Source: Leidyana gryllorum EB-2025a (lineage: Eukaryota > Protista > Apicomplexa). Taken from it: DNA of 64,000 bases. The DNA is taken from assembly GCA_048772705.1 (NCBI GenBank), contig JBLWGC010000180.1, forward strand, positions 1 to 64,000, written 5' to 3'. Within the stretch, counting starts at the first letter, position 1; every line of letters begins with the position of its first letter. The notes beneath the pieces were generated by a model. The model was not told where the DNA came from. It was given only the letters and a program-made list of their open reading frames with translations, and ran no database searches. The translations under genes were made by a program, and so were the position numbers. Below, piece by piece: positions 1-11,188 of this stretch.

Positions 1-3000
1 CACCTCCGAGGGAGCGTACTGGTGCAAGGGCCCGCCGCAGCAGTCTCCCGTCCCTAACAGCATCGAACGGGGTGTCACTCAGTGTCTCAGTCCCAATCAC
101 CACCGTAGATGACGCAGCAAACGTCCCTGCCTCTCATCCAGGTCCCAACTCGTTCCTCCGACGCCAGTCAAGAGTGAGCGCGGTATGCCCGCGCTCTTCC
201 AACTCCCCGTCGATCGCGCGTCCCTCGAAGTCGGCCTCTCGGAATGCCGTAGGTGATGAGGGGGCTCCGCGCCGCCCTTGCTGGAGTACGAGGCGCTCCG
301 AACCGGATGCGTATTCGCCACGTCGCACTCCTGCGGGTCGACCTCGAACCTCCGAGGTGTCGCGAGATCTGCCAACGTGGTCATCTAGTTTTGAGAGTGA
401 CTCGCCATCTGACCGGATGAGACGCCGGCTGTACGAAAGATCTCTGCAAAGTTCTGTCGAGCGAGATCTGCCGGAATCAATTGGAAGGACGGCTACAGCG
501 CATAATGACGCTCCAACGACGATATCTTCTCCGCTCCCTCCACTTCTCGAAGAGGTCCCTCGGCCTCGGATGCAACGCCCGCCTCAATCAACAAGACGAT
601 CTTCCCTCCCTCCACTTCTCGAAGAAGTCCCTCGGCCTCGGAGGCAAGCCAGCAAGCTCACTTCTCGCAAACAGAATCGGAGAACACCGAGGAGAGTGTC
701 CGCGCCAGCCGTCAGAAGTACGCCTCCTCCGCTTCGTGGTCGGTCGACAGTGCGAGACTTGCCACAGCCAGCCGTGAGGCCGTCTCGACGCAGTCTGGAT
801 GAATATCACATGAGCACTCGTCAAGAAATGTCCCGAATGTCTACACGGGCTTCCTCGCTTTGTCCGTCTCCACGCTCTGACCATCCTTCTGGAATCACTG
901 TGGTGAGCGACAACGAGGTAGAAATCGACTTGTTGAGTTCGGAGGAGAACGACTCGGACTCCTCTCCTGAGAGCGAGGTTGACATAGAAATCGACGAAAG
1001 AGAGTCTCACAGTCCTCGGCCGAAGAGACAGCGGCTGTCGAAGCAAGTTGGAGGGTCACGAGAGGTCCCCAGTGGAGGGCGAGTTGGGCGGCGTCAGAGA
1101 TATCGGAGAGCGAACATCGAGACGCTGAGACTGTGGCGCAATTTCTGCAGCCACGAGGTACGAGTAGCTCTCAATGCGAACTTGCCAGACGAGCAACTGC
1201 TGAGTGTGTTAGGACTCAATGAAGATCAGGTACACGACCGAGTCCTCATGCAGCGCTACTTGGGTATGGGGGCATCCATGGTAGATCAGTATCTACTGCA
1301 TGATCTGATGAAGAGGCTCGCTCAGATCCGCACTCAGAAGCAGAGACTCAGATCAGAAGCTCACGGGAGATGCCAAATGGTGGGGCGTTTCACCGGTGGT
1401 TACTACACCAAACATCACATCGAGCTTCGGTCCCTTTTCTCAATGGTGGGATTGCCATGTGCTTTGGTCACCTTCACACTACCGAAGAACGAGAACAAAT
1501 TTGGCCGCGATTATCTTGCAGACTGCAAGTCTCAGCTCGATAGATTATGGGCGGAACTTACGAGTCTCCCGTGGTTAGCTGTGTGTTGGGGGCGGATAGA
1601 ATTTGCGGACGATGTACCACACATTCACACCCTGCTTTGGCGACGTCGCGGTCGGATGGTCGAAGATCTGTCGGACATTGTGTGTTGGCGGTCTCGAAGA
1701 GAGCGTCAACAATATGTCAGACGGGGAACGATGGGCAGACAAGAGTACCAACCCACTGGAGACGACGCTTTGAACGAGGATGGCCTCCTGCACCCAACCG
1801 CGCTAACACAAAGTCTTACCGACTTGGTACCAATTGTTGGGGGTCAAGTACAGCACAGAGGGCGGTTGCCAGTCCTACGTGGTGTGAACTGGGACTTTCG
1901 CCAGCACGTATCGAGGGTCATCTCAGACAGGGGACTCTCCACATATTTGACCAAGAGCCAACCTACATCCTTCTCGGTCTTACTGTGGTCATTTGCAAAC
2001 TGGCCGATCTTCAAAAGTCACAATATTCGCTTCTTCAGTCCTCCATTCCACTGGCCTAACACCAATATTGCCACCAGAAGTCGTTGTTTATTGGACTGTG
2101 CAATTCACACTTTGGATCGGGGTCGGAAAGTGCCCAGTCCCCAAGTTCTGCAGGTGCCGCGGGTGAGACTCTGCAACTTCGATCGGATGTGGGATACAAG
2201 TATCTCAACGGTTCAGCTACTTTGTCCTCAGAATAGCGAAGCGGGAGACATCAGCTGCATCCCCATTGACACTATGCAGTCTGTATTGAGCCGTGCCACT
2301 TATTACATGCAGGGAGAATTTCAGTGTTACTCGACAGAACGCAGCGGGCAACGAAAGTGGGATGAGCGCATGACACAAACAGAGACGGCAGACGCAGCTC
2401 GTCTTCCTGCAGTCTCCGACCTCATATCCAAACTTGGTCCCGCGAAAAGTGCAGTCCTTAGGCTGGAACACTCTGGTGGTCGAGTGGCAGCCGCAGTCGC
2501 TAAATCTATTTTGGCTCACTGTGTCGAGCACCACGCATCAGGTATCATCGCCAGTGATGCTGAGCAGGTGTGTTGTGGCACACTTGCTCTGCCCCTGCAT
2601 GACTTTGCTTTCAGTCGAAATCAACCATCCGCTCACAGTGTTATTCTCGTTCTCGCACACGCGGACGAGGAAAATGAGGGATTCTGGAAATGTCTACGGG
2701 AATCCGTTCCTTCCAAATCGGTGCTCATAGTGCTTTGTTGGGGCGGGAGTGCTTCTTTTCAGCCACAACGTTTCATGCGTCCGCGAGGAAGCTGGGCACA
2801 ATTGGCAATAGAGCCATTGACCATACGTGCCTTACAGGAGCAGCGAATGCCGATTCCCAAACTCATCGCGACAAGAAATGCCTCCGACACCAAAGTTGTT
2901 CACCCAGTGTACTGGCAAACAGTATACCGCTTCACCGCCCCTTTGTACGACCTGCCATGGTGGATATGCCGGCCGCTCGAGATACACCGCGGTCAGCAAG

Positions 3001-3284
3001 TGGTCTTGACCGAAAACATATCGCCCTCAATCGGTCTGAGTTGTGGTACGAAGTTGGAGATATCTGGGTGGGGAGATCGGAACAGTTGTGCAGCCAGCTT
3101 GCCGGGAGCTCAAAAACCCTGGCTTCATCCGTCAGAACTGTGCCATCTCGAAGTCAGAATCCTCTCAACGGGTACGGTCTGTCACTTGAGACGGTCTCAC
3201 AGACGCGGAATGGCCCAATTCCCCATCGTCACCACCCAAGCCGATGTGGAGCGTCTCTTTGAGGGCCCCGATTGCGTCTCTTGA
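1..3284 (+). CDS. Helitron2/Helentron-like Rep (HUH endonuclease) plus degenerate Pif1-like helicase protein; 5' end probably lies outside the window
   Basis: Intronless frame is open from position 3 to TGA 3284. Rep motif 1 GLPCALVTFT (~1449-1478), HUH motif RIEF..PHIHTLLW (~1593-1640), NWDF...YLTK (~1887-1955). Pif1-2B-like LEIHRGQQVVLTENISPSIGLSCGT (~2976-3050) and QFPIV (~3216). Long disordered S/R/P-rich N-terminus. Confidence 0.7.
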   Translation, partial: PPRERTGARARRSSLPSLTASNGVSLSVSVPITTVDDAANVPASHPGPNSFLRRQSRVSAVCPRSSNSPSIARPSKSASRNAVGDEGAPRRPCWSTRRSEPDAYSPRRTPAGRPRTSEVSRDLPTWSSSFESDSPSDRMRRRLYERSLQSSVERDLPESIGRTATAHNDAPTTISSPLPPLLEEVPRPRMQRPPQSTRRSSLPPLLEEVPRPRRQASKLTSRKQNRRTPRRVSAPAVRSTPPPLRGRSTVRDLPQPAVRPSRRSLDEYHMSTRQEMSRMSTRASSLCPSPRSDHPSGITVVSDNEVEIDLLSSEENDSDSSPESEVDIEIDERESHSPRPKRQRLSKQVGGSREVPSGGRVGRRQRYRRANIETLRLWRNFCSHEVRVALNANLPDEQLLSVLGLNEDQVHDRVLMQRYLGMGASMVDQYLLHDLMKRLAQIRTQKQRLRSEAHGRCQMVGRFTGGYYTKHHIELRSLFSMVGLPCALVTFTLPKNENKFGRDYLADCKSQLDRLWAELTSLPWLAVCWGRIEFADDVPHIHTLLWRRRGRMVEDLSDIVCWRSRRERQQYVRRGTMGRQEYQPTGDDALNEDGLLHPTALTQSLTDLVPIVGGQVQHRGRLPVLRGVNWDFRQHVSRVISDRGLSTYLTKSQPTSFSVLLWSFANWPIFKSHNIRFFSPPFHWPNTNIATRSRCLLDCAIHTLDRGRKVPSPQVLQVPRVRLCNFDRMWDTSISTVQLLCPQNSEAGDISCIPIDTMQSVLSRATYYMQGEFQCYSTERSGQRKWDERMTQTETADAARLPAVSDLISKLGPAKSAVLRLEHSGGRVAAAVAKSILAHCVEHHASGIIASDAEQVCCGTLALPLHDFAFSRNQPSAHSVILVLAHADEENEGFWKCLRESVPSKSVLIVLCWGGSASFQPQRFMRPRGSWAQLAIEPLTIRALQEQRMPIPKLIATRNASDTKVVHPVYWQTVYRFTAPLYDLPWWICRPLEIHRGQQVVLTENISPSIGLSCGTKLEISGWGDRNSCAASLPGAQKPWLHPSELCHLEVRILSTGTVCHLRRSHRRGMAQFPIVTTQADVERLFEGPDCVS
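534..642 (+). repeat. 37-bp direct repeat (534-570 and 606-642, 36/37 identical) encoding LPPLLEEVPRPR twice
   Basis: ctccctccacttctcgaagaRgtccctcggcctcgga occurs twice, 72 nt apart. Confidence 0.9.
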
Positions 3285-6200
3285 TCAAGATTCTATGTCA
3301 GGTGTGACCGTCTTAACATGTACAAATGCTTTGCTGATCTCCGCATCGAGTGTCGTCAAGGAGGGCCAAGAATCGATCGCTAGGCCTCTCCGGCTACAGA
3401 TGCTCAAGAGCTGTCGATAGCCCTCACAAACCGCAACTTTCGTGGCTTCCAGCAGCATGGACGCAACATCAGCCGGTGTACTCTCCCATGCCTCGGTTGC
3501 ATTAGACTTGAGTTGCACTGATGGTTTTTCCGACGAGGAGGGCATCTCCACACTCGCATCGGCAGGTTGTGAGAGCTCCTCTAGAGGCACTATGGGATTG
3601 GCATCCTCAACTTCGGTATTCAGCAGGTAGAGGGCCACTCCGTTGGCTATGGAGGGGAGACATTCTCGCAACTTCAACCAGAAGGTTTCTAAATCCAGTT
3701 CACATCCAGCTTTCCAGTGTTCGCTGGCGGCGTCCTCTTGCGCCAATTTGCTGGCGGCCTCCACGAGCGGCATTATGACTGCAACAAGAGTTTCTAAGGA
3801 ACAGAGAACGTCACTTACTCGGCTTCGTTGCCCATCCAATCGCTGTCTCGAACAAAGCGTCGAGACGTCCCTCCAACATTTCTCTCGCATCTAATTCACT
3901 CTCTTGTACCTCGGGTACAATGAAAGCAAAGAATATTCCAGTAATTCCCGGCTTCTCGCCCGCAATCGAGCTGCTGTCGAACAATAGGGAGATCCCCCGT
4001 CGTAGCCGAGAGAAACTCAGCGACCTTGACGAAGTACTGACGTCGAGATCCAGAGCCTCGATACGACCTTTGAGGTACAGTAGGTGTCTGATTCCGAATA
4101 AAGAACCGTGTAATGGGTCGCCCTCCTGAGAGACATTGCAACTAAAGGTATTCTTGATTGGGCTTACATGAGCTTGTACTATCATATTCACGGCCTCCTG
4201 TGTCTTCTCCAAACAGCTGATAATTAATTCCTGCACGAGGCAGTGAGATGCACACCCTGCGGCGCTAAGGGACGTACGTGGGCCAGGATTCGGAGGATGG
4301 ACGGTTGAAGTGCAGAGCGCATCAGCATCAGAGACCTTATGCTCTCCATTATTATTGGATGATATATCGCAGCTCGAGTGGCGGCGGGAGCTTCGAGCAG
4401 AATGCGAGGATAGTCCAGGGATTCCGAGGAGAGGGCGTGAGATCGTACTTGATTGGCAATGAAAGCCTCAGCTCTCACAACCATACGCTCTTGGAGATCC
4501 TTTTGTAGCTGTTTGACAGGTCGAAGTTTATGTCTCTCTATTTCTTGGATCAGAGGCGAGACAACAGACAAAGACGCGGTGCGAACATCGATAACATCTA
4601 TCGCCAGAGCATCGTATATGTCTCTGCATCACAAAGTGATCGTTAACTCTTCGCTCTCGAGCTCTCACCTAATGATCTCCAGATCATAACACGCCAATAC
4701 TTTCCGTCGCGCGATATCATAAAACTCGTTTCCCAGTTGTGTGATGATATAAGTCAAAGTGGCCTGGTGGTGGTCCTGTCGGAGTAATTGTCATGTCTCC
4801 TCACCTTATATGATTGGGTTGGGGGACCAAAGTAGCCTGTGTAGAGATCCACCTCATAATGCGCTATGGACAACCAGAAAGTGGTTATCTGTCGCAGTGC
4901 AATGTCAAGAGTCGTATTTTCCAACTCGTGTCGTCTCAGCAAATGGTGTAGTTGCTCTCTGAACGCCGCAGCAACAAAGCGGAGACGCAGAGAAGCGTAC
5001 ACGCCGTTGAGACCCTCCAGAGTACTACGGATACCGTGAGTTGGAGTCTCGACTCCCAATCGTACCTTCTATAAATCAGCAGACCAGTGGTGCGATCTCT
5101 CTCAGACAACAGCGTAATGATCGGGAGAACGTGAGCTCCGTATGCTCTAAGAGAAGAAATCGCCCGGATTCGGAGATGAAGGCTACATACCTGTATTTGA
5201 TGTAGAACCATCTGGCCGGAAGGAAAGAACTGTGCTCGTCCCCTCCAAGGCCAAAAGGATCTTCAGCTTGCTCTCCATCGTCCCCTGGAGGGCGTGGCAG
5301 ACCTCCAAGTGGCATAGCAACATTAGTAAGGCGACTGACATATCTCTGACGATCTATTGCTGCTTTCAAGTTTCTGCGGGACTTTTCCGCCTGCTGAGCG
5401 AGCGTCCTTTCAGCCTTCTCCATGGTCCGTGACACTATGGCCCGCAAGGAGTTACACACACGTGACCGAAACTTGCTGTAGCGTTGTCGGTAAGCAGACG
5501 CCTGTTGCACTTTGGTCAACACTTCCATAAATGGTCTCGTTACCTCTGGATGAGCTGACATAGTCAATTCCGCTTCAGAAGCATCTAAACTCTCTAATAT
5601 CCGCCCAAAGCCTTTCAGGTCATGTGTAAGGACCTGCACCACCACTGCGTCGTCAAAAGCCTCCAGTCTCTTATACAAGGGCTCATCGGTCAGCAAATAG
5701 GGAGACAGTTGGGCTGCAATCAGAGTTCGCCTTTTCTAATAATGAAGGGCTGTACAGCACGTATACATCGGCGTAGCTCACCTCACTCTCCTGACGGTCT
5801 CCGGCCAAAGAGCGGGTACGGGCTTCCGACTCTGTCAACTTCTTGTTCCCGAGTGCGATGTTGGAGTCCAATTGACTCATGGCCTCTACAAGAGTCTCGT
5901 TCAAACTTTGAGCTTGTCGACCCAAGCTCTCTGTTCTCCAGTACCTGAAAGGGAGAGTGCACGACCAACTCGGCGACAAAGATTGTACCATTCGTATTGG
6001 TTACTTGTGATGCGTAAACTTCTGCTGTACGACGGACTCTCGGCATGAGAGGTGGTCTCCGGTGTCTGTGGCGACGAATGAGTGACGTGAGCAATACGGT
6101 GCACCTTATGATGCTGCAATACAGCGGTGAGCTCCTCATCCGTGAGGAGTTTGCGATCAACTGAATCGGGTCCTTCGCCCAGCAGCACGGCAGAGGCGGC

Positions 6201-6311
6201 ACGAGACCCCCATATAGCCAATTTGGAGACAAAGTAAGAGCGATTAGTGCTCTCGTCAAATCTATGAGGACATTGAGTCAATTCTGCCACGAAGCCATCC
6301 AGGCCGTTCAT
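3285..6311 (-). CDS. COG3: Conserved oligomeric Golgi complex subunit 3 (Sec34), multi-exon
   Basis: SKLAIW..LLTDEE N-terminus; [30 protein letters not shown]; [14 protein letters not shown]; [16 protein letters not shown]; ALYLLNTE. All resemble COG3 blocks across ORF pieces 5901-6311, 5076-5696, 4224-4571, 3811-4236 and 3285-3890. Confidence 0.75.
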
Positions 6312-7374
6312 GCTTTATTTTGGACACTATTCTGCAAATCAGAAAAGTCAAACTCGGGGTGCTGAGCCTTGAAAGTCTCTAAGAGTCGAGCTTGTTCCTG
6401 ATCGGCTGAGGTCGGTAGTCCCATTTGTCGTTGTCTCTGGTCATACATCATCTTTTCGACGGCTTTTCTCGTTTCCGCATCCAAATCAGCCAATGAAGCG
6501 TTCTAGTTATCAGTGTGAATAGCGATCATATGTACCAATTCTCACCTCAGGCTCAACCTTTTGCGTATCAATCTTCGGCTCGCCCTCACAAACACAGTCC
6601 CACCATCCCATGGAATCTGATTTTTCCAAGTTCAACTGAATGAGTGTGCCATCAACGATGGACCACACGCTATCATCCGCATCGACACGGCCTGGCAAGT
6701 TGCCCTCTGAGCACAGAAGAAAGACTGTGTGGCAATCAATTTATCTGGCCCTTACCCAGAATCTTGTTGCCTTTCACCACGACGGAAATAAAGTTGGATT
6801 TGATGACTATCTTGCATTCCCGAGAAGTGACACGTTTGTCAGTGGGAATATTGATCTCCACCCCTTTGAGTGTCTGGGTCCAGTAATATCGGTCAGTCTT
6901 GCCCCCATTTCCCGCATTGGGTTTGATCTTCCCGGCATTGTCTTCGGTGGCATCAGCTTGTTTCTCCCCATCTGCCAGCTTCCGATTTTTCTCAGGAGAC
7001 ACCACCGTCTCGGGCTGTGGAGACTCCACCACTTCTTCAAATCGCGGGGCACTCCTCAGTCTTTCTTGCTCTTCATGGAACTTACGCAGATTCTCACTTT
7101 CGCAATCCGTCGTTTCTGGCGTCTTGTTAGCGGCAGCCTTTCGCTTGGCCTCCTGTTCTCTCTTCTCTTTAGATAGCTTCTCTTGTCTTTCCTTCTGATA
7201 TATCCAGTTCTCTTTGTCGAAAGCCTCGAGTATAAGAGTCTTTCCCTTGTTTGGATCCTCGAAGAAGTCCGTACGCCGACGGAGGAAGCCGAACACTGCT
7301 GTCATGATCCCATCTATGCCCTCCTCCGATGCCTTGCGGAACAACACCTGCTCCACGACGTCCATCGTGCTCAT
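6308..7374 (-). CDS. NUDC: Nuclear migration protein NudC (CS/p23 domain co-chaperone)
   Basis: [11 protein letters not shown]; PNAGNGG..YYWTQTL; [20 protein letters not shown]; [18 protein letters not shown]...HPEFDFS; two short introns. Confidence 0.93.
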
Positions 7375-7389
7375 ACTCTAATTTTTATT

Positions 7390-9064
7390 ATGAGCTTCTG
7401 GAAGGCTCTCCAGCATGAGACTCCTAGTATGCGAAGAGGGCTATGGGGTGGAGGTGTACCAGTCATCCTCGAGCTTATATTGCCGTCTCAATCACTCAAG
7501 CTGCTGGTGATAGTGGCCTTCCAGCAGAAACAGTGTGCATGTGCCTTCTTCAGATTATGGCTCACCGTGTGAACTATCCACTCCAGTTGGTAGTACCTTT
7601 GCTAACTCGTTTGGCTCCTGTATTGGGTTCTGATGATTTAACACTGAATGTCGCTGATGGTATTCAGTGTGAATTCAAGTATCAGCAAGAATCATTCCCT
7701 CCAACGTAAGCTGAACTCCAGCTGCATCGAGCGATATCTCAGAGTACCTATTGGTGTAGCCTTCGATTTGTTGGTGGACCGCGTGCGTTACATCTCGCCT
7801 GTTGATCCCTTGGCCCTAGTTGGGCATTTCAGCAAAGGACTGGATCTCAAAGAGCCCCTTTACTTGAAATGTACCGTATCCACAGAGGCTGTGGAAGCGA
7901 GAGATCTTCTGGCAAATCAGGTTCGCCATGCCACTCAGTGCTGCACGCGATACAATGTAGCTGCAATTACTCGCACGACTGACTCTGCACTCCTGGAAGC
8001 TGGTATAGCATTAAACGGATTGCGCCATTCTGATATCTGAGACAGGGAGCCAGTCTCTGGAGTCAACGGAGTTTCATTGGCATCCAGCGCATGTTTAAAG
8101 GTAGCTTGGGGAGACAGACTGGCCAAAGTATTTGTCCGCGCAGGGCACCTGGAAGCTTTCTACAATGCTTTCTCTATCGGAACAATCTATCAGAGTGACT
8201 ATGAGATCGCGAACGGTTGCTTCAAGTCGCTGGAGGGTTACTTGGACGAGTACTTTGAGCCTCTCTTCATGCGGGGTTTACCAGAAGCAGGCAAGAATCA
8301 CCGGAAGCGGATAACTCGGCCGCTTGAGCCTGAGACTCCAGCTCCGGTGTCGTACGAATCTCAGCGGTTCAAAAACTCCCTGATCCAGGATATTAAAGCG
8401 TGGGGCCTCAATCTTGCAGCTCGAGTAGCTCCCAGAGTTCAACAGAGCAGCGCTCCTGCCGTCCAAAATCCTCGCTCCCCACTCCCGAATTACAGTCCAA
8501 CGACAATCCAGAGCAACCAGCCCTTCATTCCCTCCTCATCCCTACCACAGGCTAAGACTGACACTGCAAGATTGGTCGTTAGATTCCACGTATGGGGTCC
8601 TCCATATCTGCATCGCATCGCCGCGTTCCCCGCAGTAGTTGGTGGTGGGTTTCATGCTGTGGGAAGCACTGCACGATGATCGATGTCAGGCGACCTATGC
8701 ACCATCGGAGACATCATCAGGAGCATTTTCCCTCCGGACATGGCTGAGTGGATAGTGCAAGCTTCTGACTCGCGGAGGTGAGAGAGTCAGCCTCCTCTGT
8801 TAGTTGAAGGTAACGTTGGTCGCTACAGTACCGCAGGGGGCACCGACCAGCAGTGCTGGGTCACAGTGCACGGATTGAATCTCCCCAGTTCTACACCCCT
8901 CGTTTGGTTGTACTGTGGGTCTATCGGTTGGTCCGCCTGCTTGGACTTATGCGTGCGGTGAGCGCCATGACTAAACTAATATGCTAATAGAAATCGTATA
9001 CAGACTTCCGCCTCAGCTCGTTGAAGAGCCCGGAGCAGCTGACAACGCACACAACAAAGGATGA
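7390..9064 (+). CDS. ATG5: Autophagy protein 5-like, multi-exon (start at 7390 or 7429; end at 8961 if the last intron is not spliced)
   Basis: GLWGGGVPV N-terminus, VPIGVAFDLL, and C-terminal VHGLNLPSSTPLVWLY match the ATG5 pattern W.G.IP / YPIG.L.DL / IHGI.....PL.WL. Confidence 0.75.
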
Positions 9065-11188
9065 CGTAGTTGATAGTCCTTCTGTATTTGTATAAGACGG
9101 CTCAGCAGTCGAGGTACCGCGAAAACGACATCCGATGACGCCCTATCGTCGAAGTGAATTATCAAAGGCAGTAGGATGTACGATCACTTACGTGGCCTCA
9201 TCCGTGTTTGCTGAGCATGGAAAGCCGTCAAACTTCCCCGCAGCCTCCACGGCCAGAGCGAAAGCGTCTGGCGTATCTGCCCCGCATAGAAAGCGCAAGA
9301 AAGATCGAGTCCACATTTGATTAGAGTCTTCGGGTGCAACTTCGAAGAGCTCGCCAGTCCATGCGCTGGTGTCAGCCACCCCATACACGAGGTAGAGACA
9401 CATTCCATTCCTGTCTCCAAGCCGATGATTCCACTTGAATAATTCTGTACTCACCGCACGTCTTCCCGGCAAAGCACCCCCTCTCGCAAGGGCATCATTC
9501 CCCAGAGCAAGCTCGCCTGCGAAGGATGCAATCCGCCCTTTTCACATCCGCTGATCCATGCCTCTCTCCCCACGGAAGCTTCCTGCAGAAGCAGTCCAAA
9601 ATCGGCACACACACACAAGTCAGTCCCTTACACCGAACAGTGTGGTCCATGCTTCATCAAAATTGTTTGCTTGTTGTCGCATTCGTAGCGTAAAATCACC
9701 CCAAAGCTGACGAAGAAGTAGACTCCGTCACAATCTGTTCATCACGGAGTAGAAATACCTGTGGAGTTTCCCTTGTGCGTTGGATAAGCTGCAGCGGAGG
9801 GGCAGCCATGTCGAGAACGATTGGAACATTCTCATCATAAATCACATCAATGAAGTTAATGAAACGTCTCAGGGGTTCTTGATCTTGTTCAATGTCAAGT
9901 CTGGGTACGCGATACACCCACATTCCGTGAGAACAGTTGCGAGCCAATGCAATGAAGTCTGCAGGGGCCGAATTGGCACGGCAGAGGTCATCGAAAGAAA
10001 CTACAGCCAAATGCTGATCTGGGTTGTAGTAGTCAACTTTCATGGCCCGATGATGGAATAGTGGCACACTCTGGTCCTGTTGTTCGGCCTCGATCAACTT
10101 CTTGAACCGCAAAGATCCCTCTATCTCCTTAAGGGTCCTGCTTGGTGTGACTACTGTGAACGAGTCGCGTAATTTGCAGTGCGTGTCTTCGGTGATACCA
10201 GTTTCAGCACTTTGCTGTTGTCGGCGAACCATTCGTAGGTCACGTTTCGTATCAATTTGCACTTCCGTGCAGTGTCGCCTTAGAATTGGTAAGAAATCTA
10301 AGAATCTATCTCGATTCAGACCTCCCTGATAAAGGTCATCAATTGGGCAATTCGATGTGCAGATCAGGGCTACTCCGTACTGAAAGAAAGCGCATTCGAC
10401 TTTATACATAATTGGTTCTACAGTCTCACCTGGAACAGTTGGCTGAATAGCCGCTTGCATATCAGAGCGTCGCTGATGTTGGTGATCTGAAACTCGTCCA
10501 ACAGTATAGCATTGAGCCCTTCAGCTACTATCCGTTTTGCTAGTTGCACGACCAAGTCCTTGTCTCCCGTGGCGTTGGAAGCGAAACCCGTCTTCGCCTC
10601 AACGCCCTCTGCCTCTAAACTCTTCAGCCGGTCGATGGCAACTTTGAGCGGGACTCTTGGTACATTTGTGTCAATCTGCTGTTGCTCCTCATACAAAGCT
10701 TGGTGAACTGCCATCATAAAGTGATGATAGTGACAACGAAGCACCCCTTCGCTTGCCGATTCGAACCCATTCGCGGGATCCGCCAAATACTCATTTAACA
10801 AATCTAGAAGTACCGTCTTTCCCTGGCCCACTGGACCGTATAAGTAGGCTCCCTTGTTCCGCACATGAATAAGATCTGAGGGCGGAGGCGTTTGCTGACG
10901 CTCCATGCGGAATAGATACGATATTCCTCTAGTGAAAGGAGGAGCTCGAGCCTCTTTCTGTGCCACATTGTTCAACTCTCGAGCAAGAACATTACGGGCT
11001 TCCTCAAACGCTGGCCGATTCACTTGCAGGTCACTCAGAATGCGCCCCAATTCCCGCACTGCAACCAGTTGCGCGTCCGCCGGCAGGAATTGCTGCTTTG
11101 CTGCGTATGAGGAGAAGTGTTGTTCGAAGCTCCGGGATAAGTAGCGACATGCTCCCCCCAAAAAGCGCTGGCTCCAGCACAGACTCAT
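9013..11188 (-). CDS. AFG1/ZapE (LACE1) family AAA ATPase, multi-exon
   Basis: KGAYLYGPVGQGKT Walker A; LLDEFQITNISDA; CTSN..DDLYQGGLNRDRF; RRFINFIDVIYD; last exon FAVPRLLSRL. Confidence 0.9.

Follow-up and report, generated by a model that had tools for sequence, protein, structure and literature searches.

The window, a stretch of 64,000 nucleotides at the beginning of contig C180 (assembly of 15.5 Mb in 237 contigs, with 22 alveolin (IMCp) matches that mark the genome as alveolate), opens inside a long gene on the forward strand. Frame +3 is stop-free and intronless from base 3 to a TGA at 3282–3284, a total of 1,093 codons, which bears out the first-pass annotation of an intronless, stop-free open reading frame (ORF) of more than 1,070 amino acids. 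The frame runs off the contig start, so the N terminus of the gene is missing, and no other contig of the assembly overlaps the start of the window. None of 20,000 shuffles of bases 3–1376 was stop-free, and 12 of 20,000 shuffles of bases 3–809 were; given these counts and the presence of the same ORF in a second organism, the open frame is not a chance product. Coding support seems less certain for bases 3–809 than for the rest of the frame; codon usage in this part shows no preference for frame +3 (one training segment was in the wrong frame). The N-terminal region at 3–1049 is of low complexity, rich in serine, arginine and proline, without a Pfam match and outside the coverage of the orthologue contig. 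Within it, a duplication with a 72-nucleotide period at 511–647 (copies 82% identical) encodes LPPLLEEVPRPR twice in frame +3. We take VEIDLLSSEE at nucleotide 918 to be a SUMO-interacting-like motif (SIM-like) and PRPKRQRL at nucleotide 1014 to be a nuclear-localization-signal-like motif (NLS-like); both roles are inferred.

Immediately downstream lies a convergent COG3-like gene with introns on the reverse strand (3285–6311; COG3_C E = 0.0013; 5′ boundary approximate), and beyond it are NudC and AFG1-like genes. The stop codon of the COG3-like gene abuts that of the ORF (0 bp between them, versus 36 bp at the orthologous locus), leaving no room for the end of an element or for further exons. 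A perfect 12-bp palindrome at 3279–3290 was rejected as a terminus, because it is merely the point where two Ser-stop ends meet and has no counterpart at the orthologous locus. The earlier statement that nearly all other genes here have introns was checked for neighbours within the first 11 kb only.

One homologue was identified, P0001, which is 41% identical to the window protein over amino acids 459–1091. Its contig, from run ERR10900107, is collinear with window positions 1350–9918 (8.6 kb) through all neighbours. Divergence at synonymous sites has reached saturation (pS 0.80, with differences at 96 of 119 fourfold sites), and dN is about 0.64. The Rep part is the best-conserved portion (51% identity) and neighbouring exons are 56–78% identical between the two loci; on these alignments, the gene is evolving faster than its neighbours. 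The orthologue contig starts with what is presumably amplification-adapter sequence, 55 bases upstream of the homologous methionine, so the N terminus is cut off there too, and Met459 is unsupported as the true start. No further homologue was recovered by a word-index search or a full HMMER scan of 1.84 billion representatives, no relative was found in viral and prokaryotic contigs, and a PDB sequence search returned no homologue (53BP1 Tudor rows at E of about 1 were treated as chance). A search for more syntenic loci through the 3′ ORF of COG3 recovered only the query itself. Protein, DNA and profile searches each find a single copy of the gene in the genome, with no dispersed copies or shared termini and no DNA similarity to resident elements. 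Copy number, synteny and dN/dS had been proposed as checks on whether the gene was domesticated, mobile or decaying. Under neutrality, an open frame of 635 codons would not survive at a saturated synonymous distance, so the gene is not a neutral fossil. It is well supported by the comparison of the two loci that the gene is old, fixed and under purifying selection, and not a mobile copy. The gene thus has what is expected of domestication, a single copy at an orthologous locus and an intact, selected ORF, albeit in two species only.

The Rep and helicase-remnant motifs quoted in the first-pass annotation are all present in the frame +3 translation. Those of the Rep half begin at nucleotides 1395 (GGYY), 1452 (LPCALVTFT), 1593 (RIEF), 1617 (PHIH), 1887 (NWDF) and 1932 (GLSTYLTK); the LLWSFANWPIF block is present as well, but matches Helitron profiles only weakly. 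Upstream of these motifs, a helix at 1275–1364 (+) resembles the Helitron1 ‘VD..ak.E..RL..IR..Q..LR’ segment, which extends the Helitron homology upstream of Met459; the resemblance was spotted post hoc, and 6 of 5,000 shuffles equalled its score. The Rep motif I block (GGYY...MVGLPCALVTFT; 1392–1481, +) scores highest of all positions in each orthologue, whichever Helitron class it is compared with. Motif II (HUH; 1593–1643, +) retains E533, H540 and H542, and motif III (1884–1967, +) has G644 at the position of the first tyrosine and Y648-L-T-K651 at that of the second. Both HUH histidines and one catalytic tyrosine, the residues previously said to be kept, are indeed present in both orthologues; E533, H540, H542, Y648 and K651, comprising the metal ligands and catalytic YxxK of an HUH endonuclease, are invariant across a 48-row alignment. 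The first catalytic tyrosine is replaced by glycine in both orthologues, so the pair of tyrosines of an autonomous Helitron is lacking. A four-residue deletion that spared the first tyrosine instead of the second cannot be fully excluded. Motif III aligns without gaps to that of the resident Helitron (YVSKSEPT versus YLTKSQPT), and is the best-scoring position only for the window protein and only against Helitron2. The Helitron QxRG motif is ADDV in the window protein and SDDV in the orthologue. Between the HUH and tyrosine motifs, around 90 residues are missing, a Zn-binding insert among them; the spacing from HUH to the second tyrosine is 108 amino acids, compared with 196 in the resident element. 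We saw no Zn-finger-like N domain in the window protein, and an equivalent of the Helraiser-type N-terminal domain is unrecognizable except for one helix.

The helicase half is more strongly reduced. A degenerate 1A-like P-loop fold (2340–2846, +) is recognizable at the level of fold and features, without the Walker A lysine or the Walker B DE, and its sequence-profile alignment does not rise above shuffles; amino acids 825–835 read GGRVAAAVAKS. The Pif1 2B domain and the strand that follows it (2976–3230, +) comprise LEIHRGQQ at nucleotide 2976 and RRSHRRGMAQFPIV at 3189–3230, the latter identical in both orthologues. This matches the reported loss of Walker A and B alongside a retained 2B segment: neither orthologue contains GK[ST], a hydrophobic-DE Walker B or HKxQG, motifs V and VI are absent, and most of 2A is missing from both. 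The helicase motifs of an autonomous Helitron (Walker A, Walker B, V and VI) are thus not met. As first read, the frame closes just past QFP without TIHKSQG or motif VI; 19 residues follow QFP, and the orthologue likewise ends shortly after RRSHRRGMAQFPIV. A spliced continuation of the helicase was ruled out, because there is no room before the COG3-like gene and both orthologues end alike.

Similarity to Helitron RepHel proteins is remote but consistent. For Helitron2, we used profiles derived from 89 relatives of the RepHel of this genome; the Helitron1 profiles came from metagenome loci. A two-orthologue profile aligned with Helitron2 over Rep motifs I–II (hhalign E = 2.5e-5; score 46, shuffle maximum 23) and over the stretch from 2B to QFP (E = 1.7e-6; score 55, shuffle maximum 24.5); the 2B match of the orthologue scored 21 bits. 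Block scans placed motif I, PHxH and 2B at their expected positions in both orthologues. No match to the window protein reached Pfam cut-offs, and BLAST against the resident RepHel was not significant. Sub-threshold Pfam matches follow the expected order (REP_ORF2-G2P, E = 0.08; Pif1_2B, E = 0.015, or 0.002 in the orthologue), and ESM features assign the N part to REP_ORF2-G2P (0.96) and the C part to PIF1 (0.90). The two-orthologue structure model is poor (pLDDT 34), yet contains a P-loop fold at amino acids 780–948 (Z 8–9) for which the top Foldseek row is T4 Dda, an SF1B helicase (E = 4.9e-3). A Rep model assisted by the Helitron2 family is confident over motifs I–II and the tyrosine helix and ranks Helraiser (7LCC) first (Z 6.7, r.m.s.d. 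2.5, 132 residues); the model was built with the Helitron2 alignment, so this ranking is partly circular, and a Z of 6.7 is middling. Matches of alignment A4 from this genome to the window were circular and were excluded from the evidence. Rep motifs I–III in order and a Pif1-family domain C-terminal to Rep, as expected of a RepHel derivative, are both present, and the similarity to an HUH Rep and to Pif1 that the first reading staked its case on was found. Helitron RepHel ancestry of the gene is, on this alignment evidence, supported.

The genome also contains a young, intact Helitron family, so the premise that apicomplexans largely lack DNA transposons does not hold here. Three long RepHel frames are 99% identical (two complete, at 1,636 amino acids, and one diverging after amino acid 1424) and are accompanied by decayed copies; the loci are C43:184578–192999, C201, C25 and C180:146131–151010. 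By protein, the family is of Helitron2 type, yet its 3′ end is a hairpin and CTAG, always followed by TC. This end occurs 41 times, in many cases near contig ends; three occurrences are on contig C180 outside the window and none is within it. The gene has neither the 3′ terminus nor the dispersed copies of an autonomous Helitron. A divergent 463-amino-acid accessory ORF without a Pfam match accompanies the resident element, and tandem cassette repeats of about 1.37 kb and a satellite lie upstream of an intact RepHel (C43:192000–201999). A Gypsy-like reverse transcriptase ORF stands beside a decayed copy (L014 4886–6835; C43 near 83–85 kb). All PIF1 matches across the genome are to Helitron copies; no ordinary host Pif1 was found, although introns could hide one. 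A RepHel that is 56% identical, in an intact Helitron, was found in run ERR10900114, which neighbours the run of the orthologue in the same series but has not been shown to be from the same organism. The accessory ORF is partly conserved at that locus, and a tRNA-like fragment lies at the end of the contig. These sequences suggest that an active Helitron lineage has persisted vertically over a long time, so that Helitrons would be long-term residents of a lineage in which a survey of 64 apicomplexan genomes concluded that there was no DNA transposon (PMC9141347).

The relationship of the gene to this family is less clear. Motif III and the identities within blocks point to Helitron2, whereas the upstream helix points to Helitron1. 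A tree built on 105 hand-anchored columns places the resident Helitron2-type family as sister group of the domesticated pair (93/96); this grouping appears in five LG+G4 variants and is lost under a mixture model. The pair drifts to Helitron1 once the resident sequences are removed, a Helitron1 grouping is not rejected (AU 0.40), and long-branch effects are likely. Descent from, or kinship with, the resident family is therefore suggested by the tree but is not robust. The Helitron2/Helentron label of the first-pass annotation remains likely from the core motifs but is unproven, as the tree rejects neither class.

We consider it probable that a RepHel gene was fixed as a host gene, trimmed, and now encodes a predicted single-tyrosine nickase of single-stranded DNA (ssDNA). 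That fixation preceded the split of two related alveolate (probably gregarine) species, with purifying selection since then, is well supported. Trimming has removed the Zn-binding insert, the first catalytic tyrosine, Walker A and B, most of 2A and motifs V–VI, leaving a dead 1A/2B module that would only hold DNA or partners. In Helraiser, the HUH pair and second tyrosine are needed for ssDNA cleavage; Y731F abolishes cleavage whereas Y727F and the Walker A mutation K1068Q do not, and each of the three abolishes transposition (PMC4778049). Weak end joining persists in a Walker A mutant (PMC5876387). The loss pattern of the gene matches that of these mutants, from which we predict a protein that cuts and re-joins DNA but can neither unwind it nor transpose. 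The protein is unable to transpose. Nicking would form a covalent 5′-phosphotyrosine link, from which re-joining is possible; the ssDNA substrate would, we infer, come from other processes, and a nuclear location is inferred from the NLS-like and SIM-like motifs. We lean, although not strongly, towards a nuclear single-tyrosine ssDNA nickase, with activity, expression and target resting on inference alone. Helraiser fragments that lack the N-terminal domain fail both to bind and to cleave DNA (PMC4778049), and the change of QxRG to an acidic DDV may spoil DNA binding. The case is limited by two known sequences, by remote similarity and by the lack of anything that identifies a substrate.

Two alternatives deny that this is a domesticated Helitron gene. 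The gene might belong to a rolling-circle element that still moves without a helicase (Replitron-like), or be a Helitron fossil in decay, readings that could be entertained because it is intronless, its 5′ flank is unseen and Y1 HUH transposases without a helicase exist (PMC10288648); a single copy at the same locus in species with saturated synonymous divergence, a frame intact in both, 0 bp to the next stop and the absence of DNA similarity to residents largely refute this and make it very improbable. The helicase-less element left open by the first-pass annotation is thereby effectively excluded, and its host-capture option gains support from copy number, synteny, selection and profile matches. 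That the gene is instead a viral or plasmid Rep-helicase, or a host gene of other origin whose motifs arose by chance, is improbable. The nearest ESM feature clusters of the Rep part are phage and viral Reps, viral Reps also match the Rep model and all E-values are modest; however, REP_ORF2-G2P also matches true RepHel proteins, Atlas structure matches of the family-assisted model are all Helitron_like_N clusters, no viral or prokaryotic contig relative exists in our searches, and four Helitron-specific blocks occur in order, with Rep followed by Pif1 2B, the Helitron architecture (PMC8788227).

The other alternatives accept domestication and differ in what the protein does. It might have no catalytic activity and serve as a scaffold or in DNA binding, keeping its histidines and tyrosine only for structure or metal binding. 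Many domesticated transposases retain DNA binding alone, the protein has lost its first tyrosine, QxRG and every ATPase motif, and the inferred SIM-like and NLS-like motifs hint at a regulator associated with chromatin; against this, the active-site E, H, H, Y and K are unchanged between the orthologues despite saturated divergence and sit within the blocks of highest conservation, and we regard silence as unlikely but not negligible. Rather unlikely, too, is an active nickase that takes part in DNA transactions of the host at large, or amplifies or shuffles host repeats, for which TnpA-REP acting on bacterial REP/BIME repeats is the precedent (PMC3333891); a role at tRNA repeats is disfavoured by the absence of tRNA genes from the window and beside the examined Helitron copies. 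For the nickase that we prefer, the likeliest single job would be to act as a decoy or brake at the ends of the co-resident Helitron family or at its ssDNA intermediates, a doubtful assignment that is inferred only. The broader proposal of an active HUH nickase from a still-resident Helitron lineage, reduced to just the residues that cutting requires and no longer able to transpose, policing the element or remodelling host repeats as a eukaryotic RAYT counterpart, is possible but falls short of being favoured.

Compared with known systems, the gene resembles Helitron RepHel proteins (Helraiser, PDB 7LCC; Helitron2/Helentron) in having Rep motifs I–III followed by a Pif1-family helicase, and Helraiser in its E-H-H triad, second tyrosine, 2B domain and QFP strand. 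It differs from Helraiser in its one tyrosine, shortened Rep, lack of Walker A/B, motifs V–VI and most of 2A, absence of termini and single fixed copy. The resident Helitron (C25, C43 and C201; homologue P0002) shares the ungapped motif III (KSEPT/KSQPT) and is the nearest neighbour in most block trees, but is multi-copy, its copies being 99% identical, and has CTAG ends and a full set of helicase motifs. TnpA-REP (RAYT) is likewise a single-copy, host-fixed, single-tyrosine HUH protein with no working helicase; unlike the window gene, it belongs to the IS200/IS605 lineage, is flanked by its REP targets and has activity shown in vitro, whereas the window gene has no flanking target and only predicted activity. 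Replitrons are also eukaryotic Y1 HUH proteins without a working helicase; however, they are mobile, multi-copy and CRESS-related and have no helicase remnant, and the window gene does not fit that description. We found no description in the literature, coverage of which was incomplete, of a whole RepHel domesticated as an orthologous host gene; in a fungal screen, Helitron Pfam domains were among candidate fusions (PMC10799480). Domesticated Helitron cis-elements have been described. The natural losses mirror laboratory mutants that cut but do not transpose, and so yield a sharp, testable prediction. Domestication is well known for DDE enzymes, and RAG1, PiggyMac, CENP-B and the Crypton-derived genes (domesticated DDE transposases or tyrosine recombinases) are, like the window gene, transposases fixed as single-copy orthologous genes under purifying selection. 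Their chemistry is different and, to our knowledge, none is an HUH RepHel; the window gene would be a rare eukaryotic adoption of that class.
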